48,520 nucleotides of DNA from Ranitomeya imitator (lineage: Eukaryota), in NCBI RefSeq assembly GCF_032444005.1, contig NC_091287.1, forward strand, positions 563,409,481 through 563,458,000, written 5' to 3'. Under the pieces are notes generated by a model. The model was given only the letters and a program-made list of their open reading frames with translations, was not told the DNA's origin and searched no databases. Position numbers and translations under genes: made by a program. Each line of letters begins with the position of its first letter. Position 1 is the stretch's first letter. This document shows, one piece after another, positions 11,656 to 36,397 of this stretch.

Positions 11656-12683
11656 CCGGTGCAGGTGAGGACACCGGAGATCAACGGCTGCCAGCGCCCG
11701 GAGCAGGCGAGGACACCGGAGATCAGCGGCTGCCAGCGCCCGGAGCAGGCGAGGACACCGGAGATCAGCGGCTGCCAGCGCCCGGTGCAGGTGGACACCG
11801 GAGATCAGCGGCTGCCAGCGCCCGGTACAGGTGGACACCGGAGATCAGCGGCTGCCAGCGCCCGGTACAAGTGAGGACACCGGAGATCAGCGGCTGCCAG
11901 CGCCCGGTACAAGTGAGGACACCGGAGATCAGCGGCTGCCAGCGCCCGGAGCAGGCGAGGACACCGGAGATCAGCGGCTGCCAGCGCCCGGTGCAGGCGA
12001 GGACACCGGATATCACCGGCTGCCAGCGCCCGGTGCAGGTGGACACCGGATATCACCGGCTGCCAGCGCCCGGAGCAGGCGAGGACACCGGAGATCAGCG
12101 GCTGCCAGCGCCCGGAGCAGGCGAGGACACCGGAGATCAGCGGCTGCCAGCGCCCGGTGCAGGCGAGGACACCGGAGATCAGCGGCTGCCAGCGCCCGGT
12201 ACAAGTGAGGACACCGGAGATCAGCGGCTGCCAGCGCCCGGTGCAGGCGAGGACACCGGAGATCAGCGGCTGCCAGCGCCCGGTGCAGGCGAGGACACCG
12301 GATATCACCGGCTGCCAGCGCCCGGTGCAGGCGAGGACACCGGAGATCAGCGGCTGCCAGCGCCCGGTACAGGTGAGGACACCGGAGATCAGCGGCTGCC
12401 AGCGCCCGGTGCAGGTGAGGACACCGGAGATCAGCGGCTGCCAGCGCCCGGTGCAGGTGAGGACACCGGAGATCAGCGGCTGCCAGCGCCCGGTGCAGGT
12501 GAGGACACCGGAGATCAGCGGCTGCCAGCACCCGGTGCAGGTGAGGACACCGGAGATCAGCGGCTGCCAGCGCCCGGTGCAGGTGAGGACACCGGAGATC
12601 AGCGGCTGCCAGCGCCCGGTGCAGGCCAGGACACCGGAGATCAGCGGCTGCCAGCGCTCGGTACAGGTGAGGACACCGGAGAT
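11656..12683. repeat. 42-bp GC-rich minisatellite (~24 units, some 39 bp)
   Basis: Unit GACACCGGAGATCAGCGGCTGCCAGCGCCCGGTGCAGGTGAG. Confidence 0.96.
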
Positions 12684-12784
12684 GAGGGGACATGAGCATT
12701 TCTTCGTCTCCTGTAGTGAGGAATCACTGCTCTTTTCTGGTGTCTCCGGCAGAATACATTGCTCCAGAGCTGTAATCTCTCCAG

Positions 12785-12915
12785 TAGTGTTGAGCGATAC
12801 CTTCCGATATCGGAAAGTATCGGTATCGGTTTGGATCGGCCGATATTCAAAAAATATCGGATATCGCCGATACCGATACCCGATCCCAATGCAAGTCAAT
12901 GGGACCAAAATATCG
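12785..12915. repeat. hAT left terminus: TIR and subterminal CCGATA/TATCGG motif array
   Basis: More than 10 copies of the motif in both orientations. Confidence 0.88.
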
Positions 12916-13954
12916 GAATTAAAATAAACCCTTTCTTTCCTTGTAGGTTCATTCTACCTGAAGGAAAACAACTAAGAATAATGTAGGATGTATGGGGGAG
13001 GTGGCGGAGACATTAAAGGCAATGAGGATTAGTCCAATCAAATAGAATAGCATGTTTTTTTTTTTTTTTTTAAAGACGTTCGGATTGAAAAAGATATTGA
13101 GTATGTAAATTTTTTTTATTTTGTCAGATATTGATGTTTCACTATTCCACGCCCTTCCCCTTCTTTTTTTTCTTTTTTTTTTTTCTTTTCCCACACTTTC
13201 ATCTTCATCATCATCAGCATCCTTGACATCAACTTCTTCACCTTATTCATCTTCTTCTTCATCTTCTACCTATTTTTTTTTTTTATTACATTCTTCATAT
13301 TCATTTTCTTCAACTATTATTATTCTTCCTATTCTACATATTCTTTTTATTCCACTGTTATTATTCTTCCTATTCTACTTCTTCATCATATTCTCATTTG
13401 TGACAGGCATTCCCGTAGTTGTTATCTATAAAAGTTGGAAGATTACACCTTCCGTTCTGCCAGTCACAAAAGTTACATTTGTCCGCGTTCAGTTTGGCCT
13501 GCAGCATCAGGCTTTATCCAGGGGCACCACGAGGAGGAACGGACTCACCCCCATACACTGCTTAGTCTTCTTCTGCATATAATTTAGATAATATCTTTTG
13601 CTCTGATATTAAGTCTTATGCTTAATGTTCTTCTGCTCTTTGTTCTGCAGCCTCTTGTTCTTCTGCTTCTCGGTCTTCCATGTTGTCGTCTCCAGGGTCT
13701 TCGTCTCCAGTGTCGTCATCTCCGCCGTCGTCGTCTCAGCCGTCGTCGTCTCCGCCGTCGTCGTCGTCGTCGTCATCGGGGTGGTCTTCCGGGTCGTCGT
13801 CATCGGGGTGGTCTTCCGGGTTGTCGACGTTAGGGTCTTCAACTTGGAAATGTAGCAGAAGGTACAAGAAGGCTGAGAAAATGCCAAGAACCAGCTGATG
13901 GAACTGGAACTCGGATGGCTACCCGAAGGTTCAAGAGCCTATGGAACTACCGAG

Positions 13955-14460
13955 GACCAGCTGACGTTACTGGAACCCGGTTACTAAGCAGGAGGTACCC
14001 GTGCTAAAAAGCACTACCAAGGACCGCCTGACGTTGGCGGAACTCGGATACCCAGAAGGAGGCACCTAAGCCAAAGGCTCTGCCCGGAACCAGATGACGT
14101 TACTGGAACCAGGATGGGGAGCAGAAGGTACAAGAGCAAAAGACACTGCCGAGAACCAGCTGACGGTACTGGAACCCGGATGGGTAGCCGAATGTCCAAG
14201 AGCCAATGGAACTACCAAGGACCAGCTGACGTTACTGGAACCCGGTTACTAAGCAGGAGGTACCCGTGCCTGAAAGCACTACCAAGGACCACCTGACATT
14301 GGTGGAACTTGGATACCCAGAAGGAGGCACCTAAGCCAAAGGCTCTGCCCGGAACCAGCTGACGGTACTGGAACCAGGATGGGGAGCAGAAGGTACAAGA
14401 GCAAAAGACACTGCCGAGAACCAGCTGACGGTGCTGGAACCAGGTGGTGGACCCCAAGGC
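13955..14460. repeat. 265-bp tandem duplication at the head of the 535-bp array
   Basis: ACCAGCTGACGTTACTGGAACCCGGTTACTAAGCAGGAGG occurs near 13957 and 14222. Confidence 0.8.
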
Positions 14461-17400
14461 CCACAGGAGAGGAGAGAACAGCTAGGCCGCGAGGCAGCCG
14501 CAGTTACCGAACCCCAACAGTCCTACAGGGGGAGCTGGGCCTACTGGCACTACAGAACCAGCCTTGACTACCAGTTCACGCAGCCCACATAGGAAGCTCC
14601 TAAACTGGAGGCACCCTGGAGTTGGCTAACTCGACCGCCCCACGACGGGGCAAGCATAGGCGTCTCAGTGAAGTTGACACAACCCGGAAACAGCTGACGG
14701 TGCTGAAACCAGGCTTGGCACGAGGGAGTACCTGTGACAAGAACACTGCCGAGAACCAGCTGGCGGTGCTGGAACCCGGATGTGTTGCCCCAGTGTGCAA
14801 GAGCCAATGGCACGACCGAGGACCAGCTGACGGTGCTGGAACCCGGTTGCTAAGCTGTAGGTGCCCGCGCTTAAAAGCACTACCAAGGACCGCCTGGCGT
14901 TGGCGGAACACGGATACCCAGGAGGAGGCACCTAAGCCAAAGGCTCGGCCCGGAACCAGCTGACGGTGCTGGAACCAGGTGGTGGACCCCAAGGCCCACA
15001 GGAGAGGAGAGAACAGCTAGGCCGCGAGGCAGCCGCAGTTACCGAACCCCAACAGTCCTACAGGGGGAGCTGGGCCTACTGGCACTACAGAACCAGCCTT
15101 GACTACCAGTTCACGCAGCCCACATAGGAAGCTCCTAAACTGGAGGCACCCTGGAGTTGGCTAACTCGACCGCCCCACGACGGGGCAAGCATAGGCGTCT
15201 CAGTGAAGTTGACACAACCCGGAAACAGCTGACGGTGCTGAAACCAGGCTTGGCACGAGGGAGTACCTGTGACAAGAACACTGCCGAGAACCAGCTGGCG
15301 GTGCTGGAACCCGGATGCGTTGCCCCAGTGTGCAAGAGCCAATGGCACGACCGAGGACCAGCTGACGGTGCTGGAACCCGGTTGCTAAGCTGTAGGTGCC
15401 CGCGCTTAAAAGCACTACCAAGGACCGCCTGGCGTTGGCGGAACACGGATACCCAGGAGGAGGCACCTAAGCCAAAGGCTCGGCCCGGAACCAGCTGACG
15501 GTGCTGGAACCAGGTGGTGGACCCCAAGGCCCACAGGAGAGGAGAGAACAGCTAGGCCGCGAGGCAGCCGCAGTTACCGAACCCCAACAGTCCTACAGGG
15601 GGAGCTGGGCCTACTGGCACTACAGAACCAGCCTTGACTACCAGTTCACGCAGCCCACATAGGAAGCTCCTAAACTGGAGGCACCCTGGAGTTGGCTAAC
15701 TCGACCGCCCCACGACGGGGCAAGCATAGGCGTCTCAGTGAAGTTGACACAACCCGGAAACAGCTGACGGTGCTGAAACCAGGCTTGGCACGAGGGAGTA
15801 CCTGTGACAAGAACACTGCCGAGAACCAGCTGGCGGTGCTGGAACCCGGATGCGTTGCCCCAGTGTGCAAGAGCCAATGGCACGACCGAGGACCAGCTGA
15901 CGGTGCTGGAACCCGGTTACTAAGCTGTAGGTGCCCGCGCTTAAAAGCACTACCAAGGACCGCCTGGCGTTGGCGGAACTCGGATACCCAGGAGGAGGCA
16001 CCTAAGCCAAAGGCTCGGCCCGGAACCAGCTGACGGTGCTGGAACCAGGTGGTGGACCCCAAGGCCCACAGGAGAGGAGAGAACAGCTAGGCCGCGAGGC
16101 AGCCGCAGTTACCGAACCCCAACAGTCCTACAGGGGGAGCTGGGCCTACTGGCACTACAGAACCAGCCTTGACTACCAGTTCACGCAGCCCACATAGGAA
16201 GCTCCTAAACTGGAGGCACCCTGGAGTTGGCTAACTCGACCGCCCCACGACGGGGCAAGCATAGGCGTCTCAGTGAAGTTGACACAACCCGGAAACAGCT
16301 GACGGTGCTGAAACCAGGCTTGGCACGAGGGAGTACCTGTGACAAGAACACTGCCGAGAACCAGCTGGCGGTGCTGGAACCCGGATGCGTTGCCCCAGTG
16401 TGCAAGAGCCAATGGCACGACCGAGGACCAGCTGACGGTGCTGGAACCCGGTTGCTAAGCTGTAGGTGCCCGCGCTTAAAAGCACTACCAAGGACCGCCT
16501 GGCGTTGGCGGAACTCGGATACCCAGGAGGAGGCACCTAAGCCAAAGGCTCGGCCCGGAACCAGCTGACGGTGCTGGAACCAGGTGGTGGACCCCAAGGC
16601 CCACAGGAGAGGAGAGAACAGCTAGGCCGCGAGGCAGCCGCAGTTACCGAACCCCAACAGTCCTACAGGGGGAGCTGGGCCTACTGGCACTACAGAACCA
16701 GCCTTGACTACCAGTTCACGCAGCCCACATAGGAAGCTCCTAAACTGGAGGCACCCTGGAGTTGGCTAACTCGACCGCCCCACGACGGGGCAAGCATAGG
16801 CGTCTCAGTGAAGTTGACACAACCCGGAAACAGCTGACGGTGCTGAAACCAGGCTTGGCACGAGGGAGTACCTGTGACAAGAACACTGCCGAGAACCAGC
16901 TGGCGGTGCTGGAACCCGGATGCGTTGCCCCAGTGTGCAAGAGCCAATGGCACGACCGAGGACCAGCTGACGGTGCTGGAACCCGGTTGCTAAGCTGTAG
17001 GTGCCCGCGCTTAAAAGCACTACCAAGGACCGCCTGGCGTTGGCGGAACTCGGATACCCAGGAGGAGGCACCTAAGCCAAAGGCTCGGCCCGGAACCAGC
17101 TGACGGTGCTGGAACCAGGTGGTGGACCCCAAGGCCCACAGGAGAGGAGAGAACAGCTAGGCCGCGAGGCAGCCGCAGTTACCGAACCCCAACAGTCCTA
17201 CAGGGGGAGCTGGGCCTACTGGCACTACAGAACCAGCCTTGACTACCAGTTCACGCAGCCCACATAGGAAGCTCCTAAACTGGAGGCACCCTGGAGTTGG
17301 CTAACTCGACCGCCCCACGACGGGGCAAGCATAGGCGTCTCAGTGAAGTTGACACAACCCGGAAACAGCTGACGGTGCTGAAACCAGGCTTGGCACGAGG

Positions 17401-20400
17401 GAGTACCTGTGACAAGAACACTGCCGAGAACCAGCTGGCGGTGCTGGAACCCGGATGCGTTGCCCCAGTGTGCAAGAGCCAATGGCACGACCGAGGACCA
17501 GCTGACGGTGCTGGAACCCGGTTACTAAGCTGTAGGTGCCCGCGCTTAAAAGCACTACCAAGGACCGCCTGGCGTTGGCGGAACTCGGATACCCAGGAGG
17601 AGGCACCTAAGCCAAAGGCTCGGCCCGGAACCAGCTGACGGTGCTGGAACCAGGTGGTGGACCCCAAGGCCCACAGGAGAGGAGAGAACAGCTAGGCCGC
17701 GAGGCAGCCGCAGTTACCGAACCCCAACAGTCCTACAGGGGGAGCTGGGCCTACTGGCACTACAGAACCAGCCTTGACTACCAGTTCACGCAGCCCACAT
17801 AGGAAGCTCCTAAACTGGAGGCACCCTGGAGTTGGCTAACTCGACCGCCCCACGACGGGGCAAGCATAGGCGTCTCAGTGAAGTTGACACAACCCGGAAA
17901 CAGCTGACGGTGCTGAAACCAGGCTTGGCACGAGGGAGTACCTGTGACAAGAACACTGCCGAGAACCAGCTGGCGGTGCTGGAACCCGGATGCGTTGCCC
18001 CAGTGTGCAAGAGCCAATGGCACGACCGAGGACCAGCTGACGGTGCTGGAACCCGGTTGCTAAGCTGTAGGTGCCCGCGCTTAAAAGCACTACCAAGGAC
18101 CGCCTGGCGTTGGCGGAACACGGATACCCAGGAGGAGGCACCTAAGCCAAAGGCTCGGCCCGGAACCAGCTGACGGTGCTGGAACCAGGTGGTGGACCCC
18201 AAGGCCCACAGGAGAGGAGAGAACAGCTAGGCCGCGAGGCAGCCGCAGTTACCGAACCCCAACAGTCCTACAGGGGGAGCTGGGCCTACTGGCACTACAG
18301 AACCAGCCTTGACTACCAGTTCACGCAGCCCACATAGGAAGCTCCTAAACTGGAGGCACCCTGGAGTTGGCTAACTCGACCGCCCCACGACGGGGCAAGC
18401 ATAGGCGTCTCAGTGAAGTTGACACAACCCGGAAACAGCTGACGGTGCTGAAACCAGGCTTGGCACGAGGGAGTACCTGTGACAAGAACACTGCCGAGAA
18501 CCAGCTGGCGGTGCTGGAACCCGGATGCGTTGCCCCAGTGTGCAAGAGCCAATGGCACGACCGAGGACCAGCTGACGGTGCTGGAACCCGGTTACTAAGC
18601 TGTAGGTGCCCGCGCTTAAAAGCACTACCAAGGACCGCCTGGCGTTGGCGGAACTCGGATACCCAGGAGGAGGCACCTAAGCCAAAGGCTCGGCCCGGAA
18701 CCAGCTGACGGTGCTGGAACCAGGTGGTGGACCCCAAGGCCCACAGGAGAGGAGAGAACAGCTAGGCCGCGAGGCAGCCGCAGATACCGAACCCCAACAG
18801 TCCTACAGGGGGAGCTGGGCCTACTGGCACTACAGAACCAGCCTTGACTACCAGTTCACGCAGCCCACATAGGAAGCTCCTAAACTGGAGGCACCCTGGA
18901 GTTGGCTAACTCGACCGCCCCACGACGGGGCAAGCATAGGCGTCTCAGTGAAGTTGACACAACCCGGAAACAGCTGACGGTGCTGAAACCAGGCTTGGCA
19001 CGAGGGAGTACCTGTGACAAGAACACTGCCGAGAACCAGCTGGCGGTGCTGGAACCCGGATGCGTTGCCCCAGTGTGCAAGAGCCAATGGCACGACCGAG
19101 GACCAGCTGACGGTGCTGGAACCCGGTTGCTAAGCTGTAGGTGCCCGCGCTTAAAAGCACTACCAAGGACCGCCTGGCGTTGGCGGAACTCGGATACCCA
19201 GGAGGAGGCACCTAAGCCAAAGGCTCGGCCCGGAACCAGCTGACGGTGCTGGAACCAGGTGGTGGACCCCAAGGCCCACAGGAGAGGAGAGAACAGCTAG
19301 GCCGCGAGGCAGCCGCAGTTACCGAACCCCAACAGTCCTACAGGGGGAGCTGGGCCTACTGGCACTACAGAACCAGCCTTGACTACCAGTTCACGCAGCC
19401 CACATAGGAAGCTCCTAAACTGGAGGCACCCTGGAGTTGGCTAACTCGACCGCCCCACGACGGGGCAAGCATAGGCGTCTCAGTGAAGTTGACACAACCC
19501 GGAAACAGCTGACGGTGCTGAAACCAGGCTTGGCACGAGGGAGTACCTGTGACAAGAACACTGCCGAGAACCAGCTGGCGGTGCTGGAACCCGGATGCGT
19601 TGCCCCAGTGTGCAAGAGCCAATGGCACGACCGAGGACCAGCTGACGGTGCTGGAACCCGGTTGCTAAGCTGTAGGTGCCCGCGCTTAAAAGCACTACCA
19701 AGGACCGCCTGGCGTTGGCGGAACTCGGATACCCAGGAGGAGGCACCTAAGCCAAAGGCTCGGCCCGGAACCAGCTGACGGTGCTGGAACCAGGTGGTGG
19801 ACCCCAAGGCCCACAGGAGAGGAGAGAACAGCTAGGCCGCGAGGCAGCCGCAGTTACCGAACCCCAACAGTCCTACAGGGGGAGCTGGGCCTACTGGCAC
19901 TACAGAACCAGCCTTGACTACCAGTTCACGCAGCCCACATAGGAAGCTCCTAAACTGGAGGCACCCTGGAGTTGGCTAACTCGACCGCCCCACGACGGGG
20001 CAAGCATAGGCGTCTCAGTGAAGTTGACACAACCCGGAAACAGCTGACGGTGCTGAAACCAGGCTTGGCACGAGGGAGTACCTGTGACAAGAACACTGCC
20101 GAGAACCAGCTGGCGGTGCTGGAACCCGGATGCGTTGCCCCAGTGTGCAAGAGCCAATGGCACGACCGAGGACCAGCTGACGGTGCTGGAACCCGGTTGC
20201 TAAGCTGTAGGTGCCCGCGCTTAAAAGCACTACCAAGGACCGCCTGGCGTTGGCGGAACACGGATACCCAGGAGGAGGCACCTAAGCCAAAGGCTCGGCC
20301 CGGAACCAGCTGACGGTGCTGGAACCAGGTGGTGGACCCCAAGGCCCACAGGAGAGGAGAGAACAGCTAGGCCGCGAGGCAGCCGCAGTTACCGAACCCC

Positions 20401-20676
20401 AACAGTCCTACAGGGGGAGCTGGGCCTACTGGCACTACAGAACCAGCCTTGACTACCAGTTCACGCAGCCCACATAGGAAGCTCCTAAACTGGAGGCACC
20501 CTGGAGTTGGCTAACTCGACCGCCCCACGACGGGGCAAGCATAGGCGTCTCAGTGAAGTTGACACAACCCGGAAACAGCTGACGGTGCTGAAACCAGGCT
20601 TGGCACGAGGGAGTACCTGTGACAAGAACACTGCCGAGAACCAGCTGGCGGTGCTGGAACCCGGATGCGTTGCCTT
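14420..20676. repeat. 535-bp tandem array inside the hAT (~11.7 near-identical units)
   Basis: The ORF track and sequence recur at an exact 535-bp period, with only a few SNPs between units. Confidence 0.97.
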
Positions 20677-20949
20677 GCCTATTAAAGATTGTCTTCCTAG
20701 AGCCCCAACTAGCGGTGTTGGAGCAAAGGGTAAGCAGGGGGAGATGAGTGTAGGCCGAAGCCTGCACTGGAGGCAGCTTTGTGTCTGCGTTGCGTTTGCA
20801 GGACACTTTGCCGGCTACACACTGGGGGAACAGCTGGCGTTGCTGAACCCCACTAACACAATGGCGTGTGTTTTTATCTGTGCAGCTAGCACTTGCGGGC
20901 AAAAACTAGCGATGTTAGAGCCCGTGTTGAAGCAGGAGGAGGAGGAGAG

Positions 20950-23900
20950 GAGCAGAGTGTAGGCCGAAGCCTAGTTGAACCAATTTCAAAGGAAACCTTT
21001 AACCCCCCCCTCAGGTGTTACAAAGTACAAGAGACACACCTTGTGCAGTATTAATGCTGCACAAGTGAAAGGTTGCTCTATTAATTTGTCTACTTGCACA
21101 CGCTGAATGAAAGACATACACAATTTACCCCATTCTACAGTCAAACTGTAGTGGATGCGTGACTTGGTTTTTTGATGAGACGCAGCACAGGTGTCCAAAA
21201 TAACGCCTTGGTGCTTGGCGCAGCTTCCTGAGCGTTGTTATTTGCTGTACAGGAGTCTGCGCTCTTGTGTTATCCCTTGGCAATGCCCTGTTAGCGCTGC
21301 CCATCTTATGACCTCATTTCATGTTGGCCGGTGCGGTTAACGATGGCCATAAATCCCAGACCCACAGTGTCTTTTCATAAAGCCACACTGCGGTGCTGGG
21401 ATTCGTGGCCTTGAGCAGTAAATATTTTGGCCGCTCACACACGTCCTTACACCTGCTTCAGACTGGGCGGCCTCTGCTGATCCCTTCTCGCATGCCGCGG
21501 CCATGAGGCTGCACAGTCTGAAGAAGGCGGAAGGAGATGAGTTAAGACAGGCGAAGATATGCATTGCTCGTGCCCATCAATCACACCCTCGCAGTCAAAA
21601 TAATTAAGACAACGAGGAGCATTTTATTCAGGCAGGGCGGACGAACAGGCGCAAGTAGCCAACCAATGATGTCAGAAGACGGGAAGCGCTACCAAGGGGG
21701 GTGCTGCGTATCATTAGAAAGGAAAGTCACACCTCAGGGACAGTGGAATGGTCTCAAAGAGACACATTTTGTACGTGTTGAGTTCCACGTGGGCAAGGAG
21801 AAAACATCAGCCACCTTGTACAAATGCAGCAGTACTGCTGTACAAGGTGGCTGTTATACATAGAAACACCTGGGGGTGGGGGCCAGGCTCCCTTCAATTT
21901 CAGTTCATGTGCCTGCGTGGCGTTTGCAGGTCACGTTGCAAGCTGCACAGCAGGGGAACAGCAGGCGGTGCTGAACCCCACTAACACATTGGCTGGTGTT
22001 TTTCTCTGTGCAGCTAGCATGTCCGGGCAGAAACTGGCGTTGTTTGAGCCCAGGGTCAGCAGGAGGAGGAGAGGAGCAAAGTGTAGGCCGAAGCCTGCAC
22101 TGGTGGCAGCTTTTGTTCTGTTGTGCCAGCGTGGCTTGTGCTGGACACGTTGCCGACTACACAGCAGGGGAACAGCTGGCGGTGCTGAACCCCACTAACA
22201 CATTGGCTGGTGTTTTTCTCTGTGCAGCTAGCATTTCCGGGCAAAAACTAGCGGTGTTTGAGCCCAGGGTCAGCAGGAGGAGTAGAGGAGCAGAGTGTAG
22301 GCCGAAGCCTAGTTGAACCAATTTCAAAGGTTACCTTTAACCCCCCCCTCAGGTGTTGCAAGGTACAAGAGCCACACCTTGAACAGCATTAATGATGCAC
22401 AAGTCAAAGGTTGCTCTATTTAATTTTGCTCCTTGCACACGCTGAATTAAACACGTACACTATTTAGCCCATTATACTGTCAAACAGTAGTGGAGGCGTG
22501 ACTACTAGTCTTTTTAAGGAGACGCAGCACAGGTGTACAAATTTACACCTAGGTGCTGTGCGCAGATTCCTTACCGTTGTTATTTGCAGTACAGGAAACT
22601 GCGCTCTTGTGTTATCCCTTGGCAATACCCTGTTAGTGCAGGCCGTCTCATGACCTCATTTCATGTTGGCCGGTGCGGTTAACGATGGCCATAAATCCCA
22701 GACCCACAGTGGCTTTTCCTAAAGTCACACTGCGGTGCTGGGATTCGTGGCCTTGTGCAGTAAATATGTTCGCCGCTCACACATGTCCTTACACCTGCTT
22801 CAGACTGGGCGGCCTCAGCTGATCCCTTATCGCATGCCGCGGCCATGAGGCCGCACAGTCAGAAGAAGGCGGAAGGAGGGGAGTGAAAACAGGGGAACAT
22901 ATGCACTGCTCGTGCCCATCAATCACACCCTCGCAGTCAAAATATATGAGACAACGGGGGGCGTTGTGTCGGGCAGGGGGGACGCACAGGCACAGCCAGC
23001 CAACCAATGATGTCAGGAGACGGGCAGCGCTAACAATGGGGGTGCTGCGTGTCATTAAAAAGGAAAGTCACACCTCAGGGACATTGTAATGGTCTGTAAT
23101 GAGACACATTTTGTACTTGTTGAGTTCCACGTGTGCAAGGAGAAAAAGTCAGCCACCTTGTACAAATGCAGCAGTACTGCTGTACAAGGTGGCTGTTATA
23201 CATAGAAACACCTGGGGGGGTGGGGGGCAGGCTCCCTTCAATTTCAGTTCATGTGCCTGCGTGGCGTTTGCAGGTCACGTTGCAAGCTACACAGCAGGGG
23301 AACAGCTGGCGTTGCTGAACCCCACTGACACATTGACTGGTGTTTTTCTCTGTGCAGATTGCATGTCCGGGCAAAAACTAGCGGTGTTAGAGCCCAGGGT
23401 CAGCAGGAGGAGGAGGAGAGGAGCAAAGTGTAGGCCGAAGCCTGCACTGGTGGCAGCTTTTGGTCGGTTGTGCCAGCGTGGCTTGTGCTGGACACGATGC
23501 CGGCTACACAGCGGGGGAACAGCAGGCGGTGCTGAACCCCACTAACACATTGGCTGGTGTTTTTCTCTGTGCAGCTAGCATGTCCGGGCAGAAACTGGCG
23601 TTGTTTGAGCCCAGGGTCAGCAGGAGGAGGAGAGGAGCAAAGTGTAGGCCGAAGCCTGCACTGGTGGCAGCTTTTGTTCTGTTGTGCCAGCGTGGCTTGT
23701 GCTGGACACGTTGCCGACTACAACTACACAGCAGGGGAACAGCTGGCGGTGCTGAACCCCACTAACACATTGGCTGGTGTTTTTCTCTGTGCAGCTAGCA
23801 TTTCCGGGCAAAAACTAGCGGTGTTTGAGCCCAGGGTCAGCAGGAGTAGAGGAGCAGAGTGTAGGCCGAAGCCTAGTTGAACCAATTTCAAAGGTTACCT

Positions 23901-26900
23901 TTAACCCCCCCCTCAGGTGTTGCAAGGTACAAGAGCCACACCTTGTGCAGCATTAATGCTGCACAAGTAAAAGGTTGCTCTATTTGTTTTGCTCCTTGCA
24001 CACGCTGACTAAAACACGTACACTATTTACCCCATTATACTGTCAAACAGTTGTGGAGGCGTGACTTGTCTTTTTAACGAGACGCAGCACAGGTGTCAAA
24101 ATTTGCACCTAGGTACTGGGCGCAGATTCCTGAGCGTTGTTATTTGCTGTACAGGAGTCTGCGCTATTGTGATCCCTTGGCCATGCGCTGTGAGCGCTTC
24201 CTGTCTTCTGACCTCATTTCATGTCGGCCGTTGCGGTTAGCGATGGACATGAATCCCAGACCCACAGTGTGTTTTTAAAAAATCACACTGCGGTGCTGGG
24301 ATTCGTGCCCTGGTGCACTAAATATGTTTGCCGCTCACACATGTCCTTACACCTGCTTCAGACTGGGCGGCCTCATCTGATCCCTTATCGCCTGCCGCGG
24401 CCATGAGGACACCCAGTCTGAAGAAGGCGGAAGGAGATGAGTGAACACAGGCAAACATATGCACTGCACATGCCCATCAATCACACCCTCGCTGTCCAAA
24501 AAAATAAGACACCGAGGGCCGTTGTTTCGAGCAGGGGAGATGCACAGGCGCAGCCAGCTAACCAATGATGTCAAAAGACGGGCAGCGCTAACAAGGGTGG
24601 TGCTGCGTGTCATTACAAAGGAAAGTCACACCTCAGGGACATTGTAATGGTCTCTAATGAGACACATTTTGTACGTGTTGAGTTCCACGTGGGCAAGGAG
24701 AAAAAGTCAGCCACCTTGTACAAATGCAGCAGTACTGCTGTACAAGGTGGCTGATATACATAGAAACACCTGTGGGTGGGGGGCAGGCTCCCTTCAATTT
24801 CAGTTCATGTGCCTGCGTGGCGTTTGCAGGTCACGTTGCAAGCTACACAGCAGGGGAACAGCTGGCGTTGCTGAACCCCACTGACACATTGACTGGTGTT
24901 TTTCTCTGTGCAGATTGCATGTCCGGGCAAAAACTAGCGGTGTTAGAGCCCAGGGTCAGCAGGAGGAGGAGGAGAGGAGCAAAGTGTAGGCCGAAGCCTG
25001 CACTGGTGGCAGCTTTTGGTCGGTTGTGCCAGCGTGGCTTGTGCTGGACACGATGCCGGCTACACAGCGGGGGAACAGCAGGCGGTGCTGAACCCCACTA
25101 ACACATTGGCTGGTGTTTTTCTCTGTGCAGCTAGCATTTCCGGGCAAAAACTAGCGGTGTTTGAGCCCAGGGTCAGCAGGAGGAGTAGAGGAGCAGAGTG
25201 TAGGCCGAAGCCTAGTTGAACCAATTTCAAAGGTTACCTTTAACCCCCCCCTCAGGTGTTGCAAGGTACAAGAGCCACACCTTGTGCAGCATTAATGCTG
25301 CACAAGTAAAAGGTTGCTCTATTTGTTTTGCTCCTTGCACACGCTGACTAAAACACGTACACTATTTACCCCATTATACTGTCAAACAGTTGTGGAGGCG
25401 TGACTTGTCTTTTTAACGAGACGCAGCACAGGTGTCAAAATTTGCACCTAGGTACTGGGCGCAGATTCCTGAGCGTTGTTATTTGCTGTACAGGAGTCTG
25501 CGCTATTGTGATCCCTTGGCCATGCGCTGTGAGCGCTTCCTGTCTTCTGACCTCATTTCATGTCGGCCGTTGCGGTTAGCGATGGACATGAATCCCAGAC
25601 CCACAGTGTGTTTTCAAAAAATCACACTGCGTGGCTGGGATTCGTGGCCTTGTGCAGTAAATAGGTTTGCCGCTTACACATGTCCTTACACCTGCTCCAG
25701 ACTGGGCGGCCTCAGCTGATCCCTTATCGCCTACCACGGCCAGGAGGCCGCACAGTCTGAAGAAGGCGGAAGGAGATGAGTTAAGACAGGCGAACATATG
25801 CACTGCTCGTGCCCATAAACCACACCCTCGCTGACAAAATAAATATGACAACGAGGGGCGTTGTTTCTAGCAGGGCGGATGCACAGGCGCAGCCAGCTAA
25901 CCATGATGACAAAAGACGGGAAACGCTACCAAGGGGGGTGCTGCGTATCATTACAAAGGAAAGTCACACCTCAGGGACAGTGGAATGGTCTCAATGAGAC
26001 ACATTTTGTACGTGTTGAGTTCCACGTGGGCAAGGAGAAAAAGTCAGCCACCTTGTACAAATGCAGCAGTACTGCTGTACTAGGTGGCTGTTATACATAG
26101 AAACACCTGGGGGGGTGGGGCCAGGTTCCCTTTTAATTTCAGTTCCTGTGCCTGCATGGCGTTTGCAGGTCACGTTGCCGGCTACACAGCAGGGGAACAG
26201 CTGGCGTTGCTGAACCCCACTAACACATTGGCTGGTGTTTTTCTCTGTGCAGCTAGCACTTCCGGGCAAAAACTAGCGGTGTTTGAGCCCAGGGTCAGCA
26301 GGAGGAGGAGAGGAGCAGAGTGTAGGCCGAAGCCTGCACTGGTGGCAGCTTTTGTTCTGTTGTGCCAGCGTGGCTTGTGCTGGACACGTTGCCGACTACA
26401 CAGCAGGGGAACAGCTGGCGGTGCTGAACCCCACTGACACATCACCTAGTGTTTTTTTCTGTGTAGACAACACTTCCAGGTGGCAACTGACAGTGTTGAA
26501 ACCCAGGGAATCAAAGAGGAGCAGAGTGTAGGCCGAAGCCTGCAGTGGAGCAAGTTGAAAGGGAACCTTTAACCCCCCCCCCCCCCCAGGCATTTGTTGC
26601 TGAAAGAGCCATCTTGTACAGCAGTAATACTGCACATGGAAAATGGTGGCTCCGAAAATTATGCTCCTTGCAAACGCTGAAGTACACACTCATATAATGT
26701 GTCCCCTCACACCGTCAAACCATCCCGGAAGTGGGACTTTCCTTTGTAATGTGACACAGCACAGCCGTCATTCCAACCCCCTTGGTGCCGGGCACCACCT
26801 CCTCAACGTTGTTTGGTTCTGTCACGGAGCCCGCACTGTAATGTTATCCCTTGGCCATGCACAGTTAGCGGTGCCCGTCTTCTGACATCATGTAGGTGTC

Positions 26901-29110
26901 AGGCTGGCAGTGCCTGTGCGTCCAAGCTGCCCGAGATCCAACCTTGCAGTGTCATCTAATGTAGTCCCACTGCGGGCCAGGGATCCATGGGCATGCGCAG
27001 TGCATATCATCGCCTCTCACTCACCTCCTTCCTGCTTCTTCAGACTGTGCGGCGTCACGGCCGTGGCATGCTATTAGGGATCAGCTGACGCCGCCTAGTC
27101 TGAAGAAGCGTGAAGAAGGGGAGTGAGAGGCTAGTATATGCACTGCGCATGGCCATGGATACCAGGCCCACTGTGGGATCACATTAGACGACACTGCGAG
27201 GTGTGATTTCGGGCAGCGTGGACGCACAGGCGCAGCCAGGACGACAACAAATGATGTCAGAGGACGGGCAGCGCAAACTGTGCATGGCCAAGGGATAACA
27301 TAACAGCGCAGGGTCCATGACGGAATCAAACAACGCTAAGGAGGCAGCGCACGGTGCCAAGGGGGTAGCAATGACGGCTGTGCTGCGTCACATTACAAAG
27401 GAAAGTCCCACCTCCGGGACGGTTGGACGGTGTGAGGGGACACATTACATGAGTGTGTAGTTCAGCGTTTGCAAGGAGCATAATTTCAAGAGCGACCTTT
27501 CCCTTGTGCAGTATTAGTGCTGCACATGGTGGCTCTTTCAGTAACAAACGCCTAGGGGGGGGGGGACAGGTCCCCTTACATTTTAGTTGTGCCAGCGTGG
27601 CGGTCGCATGACACGTTGCCGGATACACAGCTGGGGATCAGCTGACGTTACTGAACCCCAATAACAGAGGAGCGACTGTTGACTGTGCACACAGCACTTC
27701 CAGGCACCAACTGGCGGTGTTAGAGCCCAGGGACAGCAGGAGGAGCAGATTGGAGGTATTGCCGCACACACAGCTGGGGATCAGCTGACGTTACTGAACC
27801 CCAATAACAGAGGAGCGACTGTTGACTGTGCACACAGCACTTCCAGGCACCAACTGGCGGTGTTAGAGCCCAGGGACAGCAGGAGGAGCAGATTGGAGGT
27901 ATTGCCGCACACACAGCTGGGGATCAGCTGACGTTACTGAACCCCAATAACAGAGGAGCGACTGTTGACTGTGCACACAGCACTTCCAGGCACCAACTGG
28001 CGGTGTTAGAGCCCAGGGACAGCAGGAGGAGCAGAGGAACAGAGTGTAGGCCGAAGCCTGATTGGAGCAAGTTGAAAGGAAACCTTTAACCCCCCCCCCC
28101 CAAGACGTTTGTAGCTGAAAGAGCCATGTTGTGCAGCACTAAGGATGCAAAAGGAAAAGGTTGCTCTTTTAATTATGCTCCTTGCAAACACCGAAGTAAA
28201 CACTAAAAATGTGTCCCTTTATACCGTTAAACCGTTCCGGAGGTGCGAATTTCCTTCGTAATGGGACACAGCACAGCTGTCATTCCTATCCCCTTGATGC
28301 CGTGCGCTGCCTCCTCAGCGTTGTTTTAAGCTGCCACGGAGCCTGCGCTGTTCTGTTAGCCCTTGGCCATGCCCAATTAGCGCTGCCTGTCTTCTGACAT
28401 AATTTGGTGTCAGGCTGTCAGTGCCTGTGCGTCCACGCTGCTCCAGATCCCACCTCGCAGTCTCATCTAACGTAATCCCACTGCGGGCCTTGGAACCATG
28501 GGCATGCACAGTGCATAACCTCGACTCTCACTCCCCTCCTTCCCTCTTCTTCAGACTGTGCGGTGTCACGGCCGTGGCATGCTAGGGATCAGCTGACGGC
28601 GCACAGTCTAAAGAAGGCGGAGGGAAATGAGCGAGAGCCCGAGGGGAAGATATGCACTGCGCATGCCCATGGATCCCAGGCCCGCAGTGTGACTCAATCA
28701 GAAGACACTGCGAGGCGGGATCTCGGGCACCGCGGCCGCACAGGCGCAGCCAGCCTGACACCAAATTATGTCAGAAGACAGGCAGCGCAAATAGGGCATG
28801 CCCAAGGGATAACAGAACAGCGCAGGCTCCGTGACAGCTTAAAACAACGCTGAGGAGGCAGCGCATGGCACCAAGGGGGTAGGAATGACGGCTGTGCTGC
28901 GTCACATTACGAAGGAAAGTCCCAGCTCCGGGACGGTATAACGGTATCAGTGAACACATTTTATAAGTGTTAAGTTCTGCGTGTGCAAAGAGCTAAAAAA
29001 AAAGAGCTACCTTTTCCTTGTGCAGCATTACTGCTGCACAAGATGGCTCTTTCAGTAACAAACGACGGGGGGGGGGGGGGACAGGTTCCCTTACATTTAG
29101 GTTGTTGTGC
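20950..29110. repeat. Six tandem 1.3-1.55-kb units, each containing a ~1-kb imperfect inverted repeat
   Basis: Units start at C-runs near 20994, 22332, 23896, 25235, 26564 and 28081 and end at G-runs. Each is centred on CTTCAGACT...AGTCTGAAG. Confidence 0.88.
27625..28045. repeat. 143-bp unit x3
   Basis: ACACAGCTGGGGATCAGCTGACG near 27625, 27768 and 27911. Confidence 0.9.
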
Positions 29111-29312
29111 CAGCGTGGCGGTCGCAGGACACATTGCCGGCTACACAGCTGGGGATCAGCTGACGTTACTGAAACCCAATAACACTGGGTCGTATGTTTT
29201 TACTGTGCAGCCTGCACTTCTGAGCCGCAACTGGCGGTGTTGGAGCCCAGGAATAGCAGTTCAGGTGGTAGAAAGATGAACACAGCAGGAGACCTGGATG
29301 ACACCCAATTAC

Positions 29313-32300
29313 TTAATCAGGCAGAGGAGTGGCAAATTCCTGCGAGATCCAGGCCTGGTTCATTTTCAGGAAAGTAAGCCGGTCAACGTTATCGGAGGAT
29401 AGTCGCATGCGACGGTCTGTTAGTACACCACCTGCGGCACTAAAGACACGTTCCGATAAGACACTAGCCGCAGGGCAAGCCAGCACCTCCAATGCATACT
29501 GGCTTAGCTCTGGCCATGTATCCAGCTTAGAGACCCAAAACTTGAACGGGGAAGAGCCGTCTGGGAGTACAGTAAGAGGGCAAGCCATGTAGTCTGTCAC
29601 CATCTGACGGAACCGTTGCCTCCTGCTGACTGGAGCCGCCGGTGATGGTGTAGACATTTGGGGCGGGCACACAAAAGTGTGCCAGAGTTGTGCCATACTG
29701 GGCTTGCCTTGGGCAGAGGCACTGCTTCTGCTCCCTCTTTGGGCAGAGCCTCCCCCACTGCCTCGACGCACTGAGCTGCTTTGTAAAGCACTAGCAGCAC
29801 TCCTCTCAGTTGGACAGGAGAAGATGATGGAATTCACCAGTGTGTCGTGGTACTCCCGCAATTTACGCTCCCGGGTCAACGCAGGGATGAGGTTTTGGAC
29901 GTTGTCCCGGTAGCGAGGATCGAGGAGGGTGAACACCCAATAATCAGGCATGTTGAGAATGTGGTCGATGCGGCGGTCGTTTCTCAGGCACTGCAGCATG
30001 AAATCCACCATGTGCTGCAGAGTGCCAACCGGCCCAGAAACGCTGTCCCCTGCTTGAGACATGATCTCTGCCCGCTCGTCATCACCCCACCCTCGCTGTA
30101 CACACTGACCACTGGACAATTGTGTCGCTCCCTCCTCTGGACGGAGCACTTCCTCCTCCATTGACTCCTCCTCATCCTCCTCACAAATTGGCCCCTGCGT
30201 ACCCCTTTGTGAGGAACCACGTGGCGCTGACTCTCCAGAAGCTGATGGAAAAGGTGACTCCTCATCCTCCACCTCTTCCACCACATCATCCCTTAACCCT
30301 TGCAAAGTTTGCTGAAGCAGGCAGATAAGGGGGACAGTCATGCTGACTAGTGCATCATCTGCACTTGCCATCCGCGTGGAATAATCAAAAGGACGCAAAA
30401 CCTGGCAGACGTCCTTCATAGTGGCCCACTCTGTGGTTGTGAAGTCTGATCGGCGCTGACTGCGACTTCTTTGCGCCTGATGCAGCTGGTACTCCATAAC
30501 TGCTTGCTGCTGCTCACACAACCGCTCCAACATATGTAACGTGGAATTCCACCGGGTAGGTAGGTCACATATGATGCGGTGTTCCGGAAGGCGGAATCGG
30601 CGCTGCAGAGCAGCAATGCGGGATCTGGCCAAGCTGGAACGCCGCAAGTGAGCACACTCTAGGCGGACCTTGTGCAGCAGGGCATCAAGATCCGGATAGT
30701 CCCTCAGAAAACTCTGCACAACCAAATTGAGCACATGTGCCAGACATGGGATGTGAGTGAGGTTGCCAAGGGCCAAAGCTGCCACCAGATTTCGGCCATT
30801 GTCACACACTACCATGCCTGGCTGGAGATTCGCTGGCAGTAACCACACATCGCTCTCCTGCTTTATGGCATTCCAGAGCTCCTGCGCTGTGTGGCTTCGA
30901 TGCCCCAATGAAACTAGTTTCAAGACGGCCTGCTGACGTTTGGCCACGGCTGTGCTCATGTCGGTCATAGGTAAACGTTCACGGGTCCATGTGGGGGTGG
31001 ACTGTGACGGATCCTGCAGAGAGGAATCAGAGGAACTGGTGTAAGAGGAGGAGTCGATGCGTACAGACTGGATTCCTGCAATCCTTGGAGTGGGCAGGAC
31101 ACGTCCTGCGCCACTCGCACGATCTGTACCTGGCTCAACAACATTAACCCAATGGGCAGTGAGGGAAACATATCGCCCCTGTCCATGCTGACTGGTCCAC
31201 GCATCGGTGGTGAGGTGGACCTTGCTACTGACGGCGTTCAGTAGCGCATGTTTTATGTTTGCCTCAACATGCCTGTGCAGGGCAGGGACAGCCTGCCTGC
31301 TGAAGTAAAAGCGGCTGGGCACCTTGTACTGTGGGACTGCCAATGCCATCAAGTCACGGAAGCTGTCAGTCTCCACCAGCCTGAACGAGAGCATTTCCAG
31401 GGACAACAGTTTGGCAATGCCTGCATTCAGAGCCTGTGCTCGGGGGTGGTTGGCCGAGAATGCCCGCCTTTTCTCCCATGCCTGTACTACCGATGGCTGT
31501 AGAGTAGACTGGGAGTGTGAGGATGACTGGGAAGGTGGTGCTGTGGGTGGAATTACACAAGGTCTCTGGGAGGAAGCCAAACCAGCTGTGCGTGAGCTGG
31601 AGGAAGAGGCAACACGAGCTGAAGAGGTGGTAGCTGCCGCTGTTGGTTGGCCTACATCTTCAGTGTGTTTCTGTAACTCCACCGCGTGCCTGGTCCGCAC
31701 ATGTTTCCACATATTTGTGGTATTGAGGTTGCTGACATTTTTCCCTCTTTTTACTTTATGATGACACAGCTTGCATTTGACAAAACAAATGTCATCTGCA
31801 ACTGTGTCAAAAAAGGACCAGGCACTGCAAGTCTTGGGAGCGCCCTTTTTGGCTTTGGAAAGAGACAGGCTCCTAACGGGTGCCAAAGTGGAGGCTACAG
31901 GCTCCGCAGTCTTCCCCCTCCCTCTCCCTCTTTGGCCCGTAAGAGGAAGCTCTTCCTCTGAGCTGCTCCCACCACCTTCCTGTTCCTCACGCCACGATGG
32001 GTCAAGGACCTCATCATCTCCACTACCCTCTGCCACCAACTGCTCCTCCTGGGTAGTCTCAGCAGCACAGTACGCACGAGAAAGCGGCACCTGAGTTTCA
32101 TCATCAGATGCGTACTGCGCTGTGGTCACCGGAGGCACTGGCCCACCTGCCTCTTCAGAGTCAGAGAGAAAAAGGTGTTGGGCATCACTGCACACTGCCT
32201 CTTCTTCCATTTCTCCAATGCTGCTTGGCTGGCCCCCTGTTTCCAAGCCAAGAGATTCAGAGAACAGAAGTAGAGACGGCTCCTGTCCTGGGCTCTCTGA

Positions 32301-32621
32301 CTGCCTGGCCAATTTGGCAGGTGGTGAAGAGACAGATGGCTGCTCTCCAGTGCTCTGTGCCTGAGAGGATGTGGCACTAACTGAAGTCGATGCCGAGGCG
32401 TTAGCTGCCATCCACCCGACAACGGCTTCAATTTGGTCTTCACGCAGCAGCGGTGCACGGCGCTCTCCGACAAAGCTGCGCATGAAGGACTGTTCCCTGC
32501 TGAAACTGAGTGACGACGAGTCACCGGCGCCCGCAGCAGGCACAGAATCACCACGTCCTCTCCCTGCTCCTCTCCCTGCTCCGCGCCCACGCCCACGTGC
32601 CTTACTCCCTGCCCTCTTCAT
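29313..32621 (-). CDS. hAT (Ac/ZBED-like) transposase, 1102 aa, uninterrupted
   Basis: BED finger (AWSFF..CKLC..KHVRTRH), catalytic TTDAW, VCDNG and SERVFS, CxxH (CLAH), TRWNST, and a C-terminal hAT dimerisation domain. Confidence 0.96.
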   Translation of the reverse strand: MKRAGSKARGRGRGAGRGAGRGRGDSVPAAGAGDSSSLSFSREQSFMRSFVGERRAPLLREDQIEAVVGWMAANASASTSVSATSSQAQSTGEQPSVSSPPAKLARQSESPGQEPSLLLFSESLGLETGGQPSSIGEMEEEAVCSDAQHLFLSDSEEAGGPVPPVTTAQYASDDETQVPLSRAYCAAETTQEEQLVAEGSGDDEVLDPSWREEQEGGGSSSEEELPLTGQRGRGRGKTAEPVASTLAPVRSLSLSKAKKGAPKTCSAWSFFDTVADDICFVKCKLCHHKVKRGKNVSNLNTTNMWKHVRTRHAVELQKHTEDVGQPTAAATTSSARVASSSSSRTAGLASSQRPCVIPPTAPPSQSSSHSQSTLQPSVVQAWEKRRAFSANHPRAQALNAGIAKLLSLEMLSFRLVETDSFRDLMALAVPQYKVPSRFYFSRQAVPALHRHVEANIKHALLNAVSSKVHLTTDAWTSQHGQGRYVSLTAHWVNVVEPGTDRASGAGRVLPTPRIAGIQSVRIDSSSYTSSSDSSLQDPSQSTPTWTRERLPMTDMSTAVAKRQQAVLKLVSLGHRSHTAQELWNAIKQESDVWLLPANLQPGMVVCDNGRNLVAALALGNLTHIPCLAHVLNLVVQSFLRDYPDLDALLHKVRLECAHLRRSSLARSRIAALQRRFRLPEHRIICDLPTRWNSTLHMLERLCEQQQAVMEYQLHQAQRSRSQRRSDFTTTEWATMKDVCQVLRPFDYSTRMASADDALVSMTVPLICLLQQTLQGLRDDVVEEVEDEESPFPSASGESAPRGSSQRGTQGPICEEDEEESMEEEVLRPEEGATQLSSGQCVQRGWGDDERAEIMSQAGDSVSGPVGTLQHMVDFMLQCLRNDRRIDHILNMPDYWVFTLLDPRYRDNVQNLIPALTRERKLREYHDTLVNSIIFSCPTERSAASALQSSSVRRGSGGGSAQRGSRSSASAQGKPSMAQLWHTFVCPPQMSTPSPAAPVSRRQRFRQMVTDYMACPLTVLPDGSSPFKFWVSKLDTWPELSQYALEVLACPAASVLSERVFSAAGGVLTDRRMRLSSDNVDRLTFLKMNQAWISQEFATPLPD

Positions 32622-32834
32622 CTTGGTTGACAGATAAAGATAAGCAGAAAAGTACTAAGGCCTTAGTGTGCTTATTCCTGTAATGCTCCTCCTAACAGGT
32701 GTAAGAAACACTAATGTTGTAAATTGTGGACTAAACTTTATTATTTTTCAAATGTGGCCTACACAAGTGTAAGTTGTGTTTGGTGAACTTAACCTTTTTT
32801 TTGGTGCAGATCGGGCTACAGAGCTAGTTTAAAT

Positions 32835-33925
32835 CACACGGAGACCGTGCAGACAGCCGTAAACGGCGCTGCAAGGCCAAGAAACCCTCCTCTAGGTTAT
32901 CCTATATAGTGTTTTTCCACTATTTAGCTGGATACAAGTGGAAAGACACTAATAGGAATTTTTTTTTTCAAATTTTAAACTGGCTGCACTATTTGAAAAA
33001 AAGGAAATTGTTTTTCAAGGTATGAGGCAGTAACGCACCCTGAGCTGAATCCAACCGGCTATGGCTGCACACAGACTACAGGGCGAGCTGCGCTCACACA
33101 GAGACCGTGCAGACAGCCGTAAACGGCGCTGCAAGGCCCCCAAAAAAACCTCTAGGTTATCCTATGTAGTGTTTTTCCACAATTGAGCTGGAGACTGGTG
33201 GAAAGACACTAATAGGAATTTTTTTTTTTTTCAAATTTTAAACAGGCTGCACTATTTGAAAAAAAGGAAAATTTTTCTCAAGGTATGAGCCAGTAACGAA
33301 CCCTGAGCTGAATCCAACCGGCTATGGCTGCACACAGACTACAGGGCGAGCTGGGCTCACACGGAGACCGTGCAGACAGCCGTAAACGGCGCTGCAAGGC
33401 CAAAAAACCCTCCTCTAGGTTATCCTATATAGTGTTTTTCCACTATTTAGCTGGATACGAGTGGAAAGACACTAATAGGAATTTTTTTTTTCAAATTTTA
33501 AACAGGCTGCACTATTTGAAAAAAAGGAAAATTTTTCTCAAGGTATGAGCCAGTAACGAACCCTGAGCTGAATCCAACCGGCTATGGCTGCACACAGACT
33601 ACAGGGCGAGCTGGGCTCACACGGAGACCGTGCAGACAGCCGTAAACGGCGCTGCAAGGCCCAAAAACCCCCCTCTAGGTTATCCTATGTAGTGTTTTTC
33701 CACAATAGAGCTGGAGAATGGTGGAAAAACACTAATAGGAAATTTGAGAAAAAATGTGCAGCAGGCTGCACTAAGAGCAAAAAAGAACAACTGTGTGAGG
33801 CAGTGTGAACCCCCCCTGAGCTGAATACAACCGGGTATATGGCTGCACACAGACTACAGAGTGAGCTGCACACACACACACACACACAGAGACCTTGCAG
33901 AACGCTGTTAAAACAGCGCTGCAAG
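32835..33925. repeat. ~260-bp tandem repeat (~4 units) upstream of the transposase, with a (CA)n tract near 33867-33888
   Basis: GAGACCGTGCAGACAGCCGTAAACGGCGCTGCAAGGCC at 32841, 33101, 33364 and 33624, with a variant at 33889. Confidence 0.9.
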
Positions 33926-34060
33926 GCAAGAGCAAGGTGAACAGTGAAGGACACACAGCGTTTTGCTAAATTAGCCTTTGGAAAGGAAAATAAAGCAATT
34001 AGCTAGCTCAACTGGCCCTCAGTTAGAACACAGCGTCCTGTCCCTAACTGAAATCACAGC

Positions 34061-34200
34061 AGAGTGAGCGCAAAATGGCGGCAGCGCTTTTTTATAGTGC
34101 AGAGTGACATCATTTCAGCAGCCAATCCAAGCCTTGCCAGTACTTACATGCCCACCATGCTAAACAGGATGTGCCCACACTTTCATTCATTCCTCATTGG
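34061..34200 (-). promoter_or_regulatory. Putative Pol II promoter of the transposase
   Basis: TATAAAAAA 34088-34096, Inr-like TCACTCT with its A 31 nt downstream (34065), YY1-like GCCGCCATTTT 34072-34082, CCAAT at 34122 and 34196. Confidence 0.6.
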
Positions 34201-34235
34201 CTGCTGCGTTCAATTTGAATTCTGGGAACTTCCGA

Positions 34236-34341
34236 TTCCGGTATCCGATACGCGGGAAGTATCGGAATTCAGTATCGGAATTCCGATACCGCAAATATCG
34301 GCCGATACCCGATACTTGCGGTATCGGAATGCTCAACACTA
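34236..34341. repeat. hAT right terminus: subterminal motif array and TIR
   Basis: Repeated CCGATA/TATCGG motifs ending in GCTCAACACTA. Confidence 0.88.
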
Positions 34342-34525
34342 CTCTCCAGTAATGTTTCCTCCTCACCTACAACTCTGATCTACACACGGTTTCTTACCCG
34401 GTAACTGCTCAACTAATCAAAGAAAAACATCAGAATCCGCAGCTGCACCGACAACTACAAATCAAGTGGAGATAGAAGCGGCCGCGGTGCAGGAGCGGAC
34501 AGAACCCGGCCCTACAGGAGGAGCA

Positions 34526-36364: not shown

Positions 36365-36373
36365 AGAAGAGCC
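36358..36373 (-). terminator. H2B copy 2 stem-loop
   Basis: CAAA-GGCTCT TCTA AGAGCC-ACCCA. Confidence 0.95.
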
Positions 36374-36397
36374 TTTGGGGTGAGGAGCGGAGCACGG

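Follow-up and report, generated by a model that had tools for sequence, protein, structure and literature searches.

The stretch of DNA considered here, 48,520 nucleotides from the genome of the poison frog Ranitomeya imitator (NC_091287.1, positions 563,409,481 to 563,458,000; in the following called the window), contains histone genes and, placed between them, a hAT transposon of unusual size. The genes for H2A, H2B, H4, H3, and H1 are found to the left of the transposon, all on the minus strand, and genes for H2B (minus strand) and H2A (plus strand) are found to the right. The element proper covers positions 12785-34341 (21,557 bp). The initial annotation placed an intact hAT at 12777-34349 and described it as splitting the histone cluster. 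The identification stands, and the coordinates include both copies of the target site duplication (TSD). The insertion site is in a spacer, with a 42-bp minisatellite on its left and a 24-bp minisatellite on its right, and as no gene is interrupted the cluster is split only in the loose sense that histone genes are found on both sides.

Very probably this is one complete, young, and autonomous hAT transposon, a member of a poison-frog family that is very abundant, and it arrived in one piece of about 20 kb. All the sequence-level hallmarks of a hAT element are present: an 8-bp TSD, short terminal inverted repeats (TIRs), and a transposase with a BED finger, a DDE core, a dimerisation domain, and the predicted fold of the Hermes transposase. 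The element is thus of an ordinary kind but unusually large.

Ends of the element and its other copies

The features that define the two ends are the following:
12777-12784: left copy of the TSD, CTCTCCAG, which fits the pattern nTnnnnAn
12785-12795, plus strand: left TIR, TAGTGTTGAGC
12796-12916: left subterminal cluster of nine TATCGG/CCGATA motifs in both orientations, presumed binding sites of the BED finger by analogy with Hermes (PMC10368747)
34232-34330: right subterminal cluster of eight TATCGG/CCGATA motifs
34331-34341, minus strand: right TIR, the reverse complement of TAGTGTTGAGC
34342-34349: right copy of the TSD, CTCTCCAG, identical to the left copy

The TIRs pair at 11 of 11 bases, and an imperfect similarity extends further inward. 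Even when one mismatch is tolerated, the 11-mer TAGTGTTGAGC has only these two matches in the window. The left junction reads …ctgtaat CTCTCCAG TAGTGTTGAGCgatacc… and the right junction …ggaatGCTCAACACTA CTCTCCAG taatg…, and when the flanks are joined without the element they read …GCTGTAAT CTCTCCAG TAATGTTT…. The perfect TIRs and the unmutated TSD noted earlier are thus confirmed letter by letter, and since the two 8-bp copies match, both ends belong to one insertion. The TATCGG/CCGATA motif is found 23 times in the window, and 17 of these are within 130 bp of the element ends (nine at the left end, within 130 bp, and eight at the right, within 100 bp), leaving six for the remainder. The terminal 116-nt stretches are strongly self-complementary (z -4.75 for the left and -6.75 for the right) because the motifs are arranged as inverted pairs. 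Taken together, the exact 8-bp duplication, the inverted ends, and the motif clusters are far beyond what chance would give. No second copy of positions 34342-34540 (199 bp from the right TSD onward), which could have served as a paralogous empty site, was found in the window.

Other copies were sought among Logan contigs from four sequencing runs, which were placed on positions 28900-34800 (5.9 kb). From run X1 (DNA, organism A) 53,415 contigs were placed on these 5.9 kb, with many variant positions, and the family is very abundant. In X4 (DNA, organism B) and X3 (an 'RNA?' run with no label) contigs match the element to exactly position 34341 and then continue in loose ends that disagree with each other (agreement 0.55-0.72); more loose ends start at 34343 and 34344. 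When the matching letters just before them are included, the flanks of these other copies begin with GTGGTTAG, TTAATGAC, CTGATAAC, and CTCAACAT, which are consensuses from few contigs. All four, as well as the element's own TSD CTCTCCAG, have T as their second and A as their seventh base, as in nTnnnnAn. This insertion's own flank has zero depth in X3, X4, and X20. Since different flanks follow one shared base, 34341, the element belongs to a multi-copy family and this base is a true transposon end. The initial annotation had proposed a search for copies with the same terminus at other target sites, and such copies are accordingly found for the right end. The preferred target of Hermes is nTnnnnAn (PMC10368747); the target pattern of the frog element appears to be nearest that of Hermes and Ac, and not of the Buster type, and the names of its relatives point to ZBED4/6.

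When it comes to sequencing depth, the summed contig depth in X3 rises from about 30-50 over the transposase reading frame to about 1160 over the terminal 120 bp (window positions 34219-34341). Many short derivatives sharing the ends would fit such a rise, but this depth is not a copy number; depth was discarded as a measure of copies altogether, since summed contig word depth does not count them.

The transposase gene and its leader

The right part of the element contains the gene and its presumed expression signals, the latter read on the sense strand of the transposase:
29313-32621, minus strand: transposase gene, intronless, 1102 amino acids, the sole long open reading frame (ORF) inside the element
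32622-34107, minus strand: ATG-free leader, 1486 nt
32834-33745: 260-bp tandem repeat, 3.5 copies, within the leader and unrelated to the 3' arrays
34090-34200, minus strand: putative RNA polymerase II promoter, of which the motifs are read directly

The ORF makes up 3309 of the 21,557 bp, or 15.3%, in agreement with the open 1102-aa frame over some 15% of the length that was first described. Contigs of 1540, 1336, and 904 nt in X3 and of 1948, 157, and 1676 nt in X4 are colinear with the ORF without joints, and the gene is thus intronless. The differences amount to 1 in 3780 positions for X3 and 4 in 3781 for X4; compared with the dominant variant in other samples, the copy deviates by no more than about 0.1%.

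Two Pfam domains are found in the protein, zf-BED (PF02892) at residues 267-312 (E 1.6e-7) and Dimer_Tnp_hAT (PF05699) at residues 1022-1086 (E 1.9e-14). Among solved structures, the sequence of the protein matches only chains of the Hermes transposase (E 2.5e-16) and the BED finger of ZBED2. In an AlphaFold model, for which an alignment of 14 sequences was used, the folded parts are confident, and disorder is predicted for residues 1-264, 324-357 and 359-380, 499-507 and 510-554, 788-860, and 939-995. When the model was compared with the PDB using Foldseek, Hermes was the sole significant fold (E 7e-14, TM score about 0.67 normalised on Hermes), and each of the 12 matches with E ≤0.001 is a Hermes chain (TM score 0.57-0.69 on the target). 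The predicted structure thus contains the RNase-H-like DDE core with an inserted helical domain that is characteristic of the Hermes fold.

The 14-sequence alignment shows no variation in the zinc ligands C283, C286, H307, and H312, nor in D607 (in CDNG), C626xxH629, W691 (in RWNS), and E1057 (in SERVFS), the latter four of which align with the corresponding blocks of Hermes. The probable first catalytic aspartate, D473 (in TTDAWTS), which is assigned from the family alignment only, is kept in all transposon-like members and lost in platypus ZBED4. The presumed catalytic residues D473, D607, E1057, C626xxH629, and W691 are therefore all retained. ZBED4 and ZBED6 are domesticated vertebrate hAT transposases and the nearest named relatives of the frog protein (27-30% identity to platypus ZBED4). 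In the alignment ZBED4 lacks the first aspartate, and it is not bounded by TIRs; the frog protein, by contrast, retains all of D, D, and E, and its gene is located between TIRs with a TSD. The closest proteins are 'ZBED4/6-like' models of dendrobatid frogs, and remoter relatives are found across anurans. Identity to the protein of Ranitomeya variabilis amounts to 85% when the two are aligned locally, and to 88% in the multiple alignment. An exact-protein look-up for other copies found no identical 1102-aa protein on record.

The disordered, RG-rich N-terminus starts with an arginine-glycine run, RGRGRGAGRGAGRGRG, at residues 2-15 (window positions 32577-32618, minus strand). This run is conserved in the Ranitomeya protein and also in P0003, a relative with no more than 51% identity, and might serve in nuclear import or as a motif for arginine methylation. 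At P0001, the Ranitomeya variabilis locus of the closest relative, the annotated protein has 1296 amino acids and a KRAB domain fused upstream of the transposase. This locus sits inside overlapping KRAB zinc-finger genes, and either the annotation is at fault or host and transposase sequences are joined in one transcript.

The putative promoter contains CCAAT at 34200-34196, ATTGG at 34126-34122, and TATAAAA at 34096-34090. Between the right end and position 34108 there are seven ATGs, the last of them (34110-34108) 12 nt upstream of the TATA box, and from 34107 to the transposase start codon (context aagATGa) there are none. Dinucleotide shuffles of the leader contain 15.9 +/- 3.1 ATGs (minimum 7, n=1000). 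When the 260-bp array is collapsed to one unit the count is still 0, against 8.8 +/- 2.3 in the shuffles (minimum 2). This shows the array as part of what, to judge from its sequence, appears to be a functional unit. ATG is the sole trinucleotide of the 64 that is absent from the leader, and the opposite strand has 15 of them; the remaining long ATG-free runs in the window are plain short-period satellites. The lack of ATG is therefore read as the probable result of selection against upstream AUGs, and hence for translation of the transposase. The AUG-free leader is a simple sign of a gene that is under selection, now or until very recently. At the other end of the gene, no poly(A) signal is found within 1.1 kb past the stop codon, and the first one on the sense strand is at 28168, within the second of two palindromes.

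The element might be intact merely by virtue of its youth, the family now being immobile because it is silenced or because the transposase is inactive. We consider such a dead relic a serious alternative, if a somewhat improbable one. No direct sign of activity was found, transcription is not established, and this copy has a private valine at residue 825 where all other contigs read glutamate. On the other hand, the 3.3-kb ORF is open and has all its catalytic residues, the leader is still free of AUG, and the copy is nearly identical to the dominant variant in several samples and under several species labels. The alternative also concerns present activity only, and would leave the identity of the element unchanged.

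Internal repeats and the size of the inserted unit

The sequence between the left subterminal cluster and the transposase gene is organised as follows:
12917-13853: unique left-arm sequence with no coding signal
13854-20757, plus strand: hierarchical tandem array in which a 66-67-bp unit builds a 265-bp unit and this a 535-bp higher-order unit
20707-26548, plus strand: older repeats, with 2.9-kb super-units (88% identical) of 1.3-1.7-kb units (80-93%) that have inner 214-217-bp repeats
26576-27565: palindrome 1, about 1 kb, arms 84% complementary
27616-28035, plus strand: 143-bp tandem repeat, 2.9 copies, 99% identical, between the palindromes
28073-29095: palindrome 2, about 1 kb, arms 82% complementary, beginning 218 bp downstream of the transposase stop codon

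The repeats total about 16.3 kb, or about 76% of the element. The earlier statement that everything but the transposase is structured repeats holds for this part and fails for the remaining non-transposase sequence, such as the 1.07 kb of unique left sequence (including the subterminal part) that precedes the first array. There are twelve 535-bp units, starting at 14338; the central ten are 99.4-100% identical, and the two at the edges match these at 94 and 88%. The older repeats are related in sequence to the 535-bp array. Indeed, the 535-bp array, the 1.3-kb units, and the palindromes have sequence in common, on the same strand, and a motif specific to them is found 30 times inside the element, on the plus strand only, and never outside it. 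The element interior does not recur in the flanks on either side of it.

A nested or composite insertion was considered and rejected. There is no second set of termini, no extra TIR match or motif cluster, and no other transposable element protein inside the element; the other internal ORFs have no Pfam match, and the 3' repeats are interrelated. Scans for Rfam families and tRNAs gave nothing inside the element. The proposal that the 66-bp unit bears a hairpin was dropped for this copy, as the unit folds no better than its shuffles (z 0.44 and -0.10).

Among the internal 1.3-2.9-kb units and the palindromes, which together cover 8.5 kb, the divergence is 7-20%, while the copy differs from the dominant variant by about 0.1% or less and has a perfect TSD and perfect TIRs. 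Most of the repeats would therefore predate the insertion, unless they evolve orders of magnitude faster than the gene. The insertion itself looks young on the same grounds, as was first proposed. The left arm and the arrays are not private to this locus either, as words sampled from positions 12785-16000 are found in other runs: for organism A the share is 0.62-0.80 across many independent runs, and for organisms B and C it is 0.67 and 0.46, while organisms D and F have none (0.00).

The same figures make it unlikely that a hAT of normal size (about 5-6 kb) was inserted and that most of the 16 kb of arrays grew in place, in which case the giant size would be specific to this locus. The ten central 535-bp units fit a recent amplification, but at most the roughly 5 kb that they occupy could be local. 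The divergence of the other 8.5 kb, the intact TSD and TIRs, and the presence of left-arm and array words in samples and species labels where the flank of this locus is unseen all argue against it. It is more improbable still that the interior is an assembly chimera or collapse, with real ends and TSD and unreliable length and array counts: the family is extremely abundant, the arrays are nearly identical across 5 kb, and no contig spanned the examined stretch, but the matching TSD ties both ends to one insertion, and the order of modules is coherent, with all 3' arrays on one strand.

Some observations nevertheless weigh against a young, autonomous element inserted as a single unit. The multi-copy evidence for a transposon end covers the right end only, and in other copies it is shared words that connect the arrays with the termini. 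For the insertion at 12785-34341 we saw neither an empty site nor an excision footprint, and no polymorphism either. The divergence from the dominant variant is an approximate estimate, because contigs drop rare variants, and V825 is private to this copy. Runs of the X3 type may contain DNA and do not establish transcription. Finally, the ten near-identical 535-bp units could have expanded after the insertion, or have been mis-sized by the assembler.

For the element as a complete hAT, the following course of events may be envisaged. The CCAAT/TATA promoter about 250 bp inside the right end would drive a transcript, and since the 1.49-kb leader has no AUG, scanning ribosomes would get to the transposase start codon. 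The BED finger would then bind the TATCGG/CCGATA repeats in the terminal 100-130 bp of each end, as in Hermes, and the DDE core would cut at the 11-bp TIRs and integrate the element with an 8-bp stagger at nTnnnnAn. By analogy with Hermes, Tol2, and Ac, the sequence needed in cis is probably limited to the terminal 100-200 bp (PMC10368747, PMC8151067). The 16.5 kb that separate the stop codon from the left end may be one lineage of home-grown repeats travelling as passive cargo, since nothing but the ends is required for hAT transposition and vectors tolerate cargo of great length. The arrays probably lengthen and shrink by unequal exchange or replication slippage. Every jump would then plant a ready-made array and two palindromes of about 1 kb at a new locus. 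The family may well be active at present.

The initial annotation regarded the element as a vehicle that spreads satellites and foldbacks. This seems a reasonable inference, given that the repeats diverge far more from each other than the copy does from its family, and that the arrays are found in other samples and species labels. It would give cut-and-paste elements a concrete route to inflate genomes and to seed satellites and palindromes at new loci. Poison-frog genomes are very large and rich in young transposons. The family also offers a natural test of how element length affects hAT transposition, and the transposase with its short ends could be tried as a large-cargo vector system. A bolder version, which we consider rather doubtful, is that the family transposes today as units of at least 20 kb, that the leader array and the palindromes are selected (the former tuning translation, the latter forming a long hairpin that, if transcribed, leads to self-limitation by small RNAs), and that spacers of histone clusters may be preferred targets. 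If this is true, the family would be a vertebrate transposon that naturally moves large cargo, has its regulation built in, and is directed to a chromatin target.

Relation to known elements and neighbouring sequences

Ac, hobo, and Tol2 are about 3-5 kb long, and the Ac and Tol2 genes contain introns. At 21.6 kb, the frog element is several times larger than such classical hATs, as was claimed at the outset, and compared to Hermes, Ac, hobo, and Tol2 it is 4-8 times longer, with 76% of its length in tandem, hierarchical, or palindromic repeats. It differs from them also by its 1102-aa transposase, with a disordered RG-rich N-terminus of 265 amino acids and two disordered inserts, by the AUG-free leader of 1.49 kb, and by a gene without introns. 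Common to them all are the 8-bp TSD of the form nTnnnnAn, a short TIR beginning with YAG, subterminal repeats in both orientations, and a transposase that combines a BED finger with a DDE core (including the inserted helical domain) and, at the C-terminus, a hAT dimerisation domain (PMC10368747).

Tetris, a foldback element of Drosophila virilis, is likewise a DNA transposon, and satellite arrays can arise from the tandem repeats inside it (PMC4079207). However, Tetris is non-autonomous and has its repeats within long TIRs (PMC4079207), while the frog element has TIRs of 11 bp, internal arrays on one strand, and its own transposase. Membership of the Foldback/Tetris class was thus rejected; the left-arm arrays have no inverted counterpart at the right end, and the transposase is intact. 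Tol2 vectors have moved more than 100 kb of cargo in experiments, and also show that hAT ends suffice for units far beyond 20 kb (PMC8151067). These large-cargo vectors are artificial, while the frog family is natural, abundant, and carries its own repeats. When it comes to abundance, hAT elements are reported to make up a few percent of poison-frog genomes (PMC11152451, PMC6278860). These papers give abundance only; our literature search found neither an account of how the poison-frog hAT elements are built nor a paper on giant, array-bearing hAT elements in frogs.

Several repeats and a retrotransposon fragment are found in the neighbourhood of the histone genes:
11656-12683: 42-bp minisatellite, 24.6 copies, 95% identical, which stops 93 bp short of the insertion site
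4361-5149 and 34526-36365: two arrays of one 24-bp minisatellite, each immediately 3' of one of the two H2B copies
1230-2327, plus strand: 365-aa ORF with an RVT_1 domain (E 1.5e-24), a fragment of a non-LTR (long terminal repeat) retrotransposon adjoining H2A
42429-47287: 48-bp satellite, 101 copies, 98% identical

Since the 42-bp array stops shortly before the insertion site, the target was in a short unique island between two minisatellites; the distance from the right end of the hAT to the second 24-bp array is 176 bp. The two 24-bp arrays overlap the Rfam histone stem-loops at 5118-5162 and 36334-36378. The 48-bp satellite gives spurious ORFs of up to 1731 amino acids in several frames.

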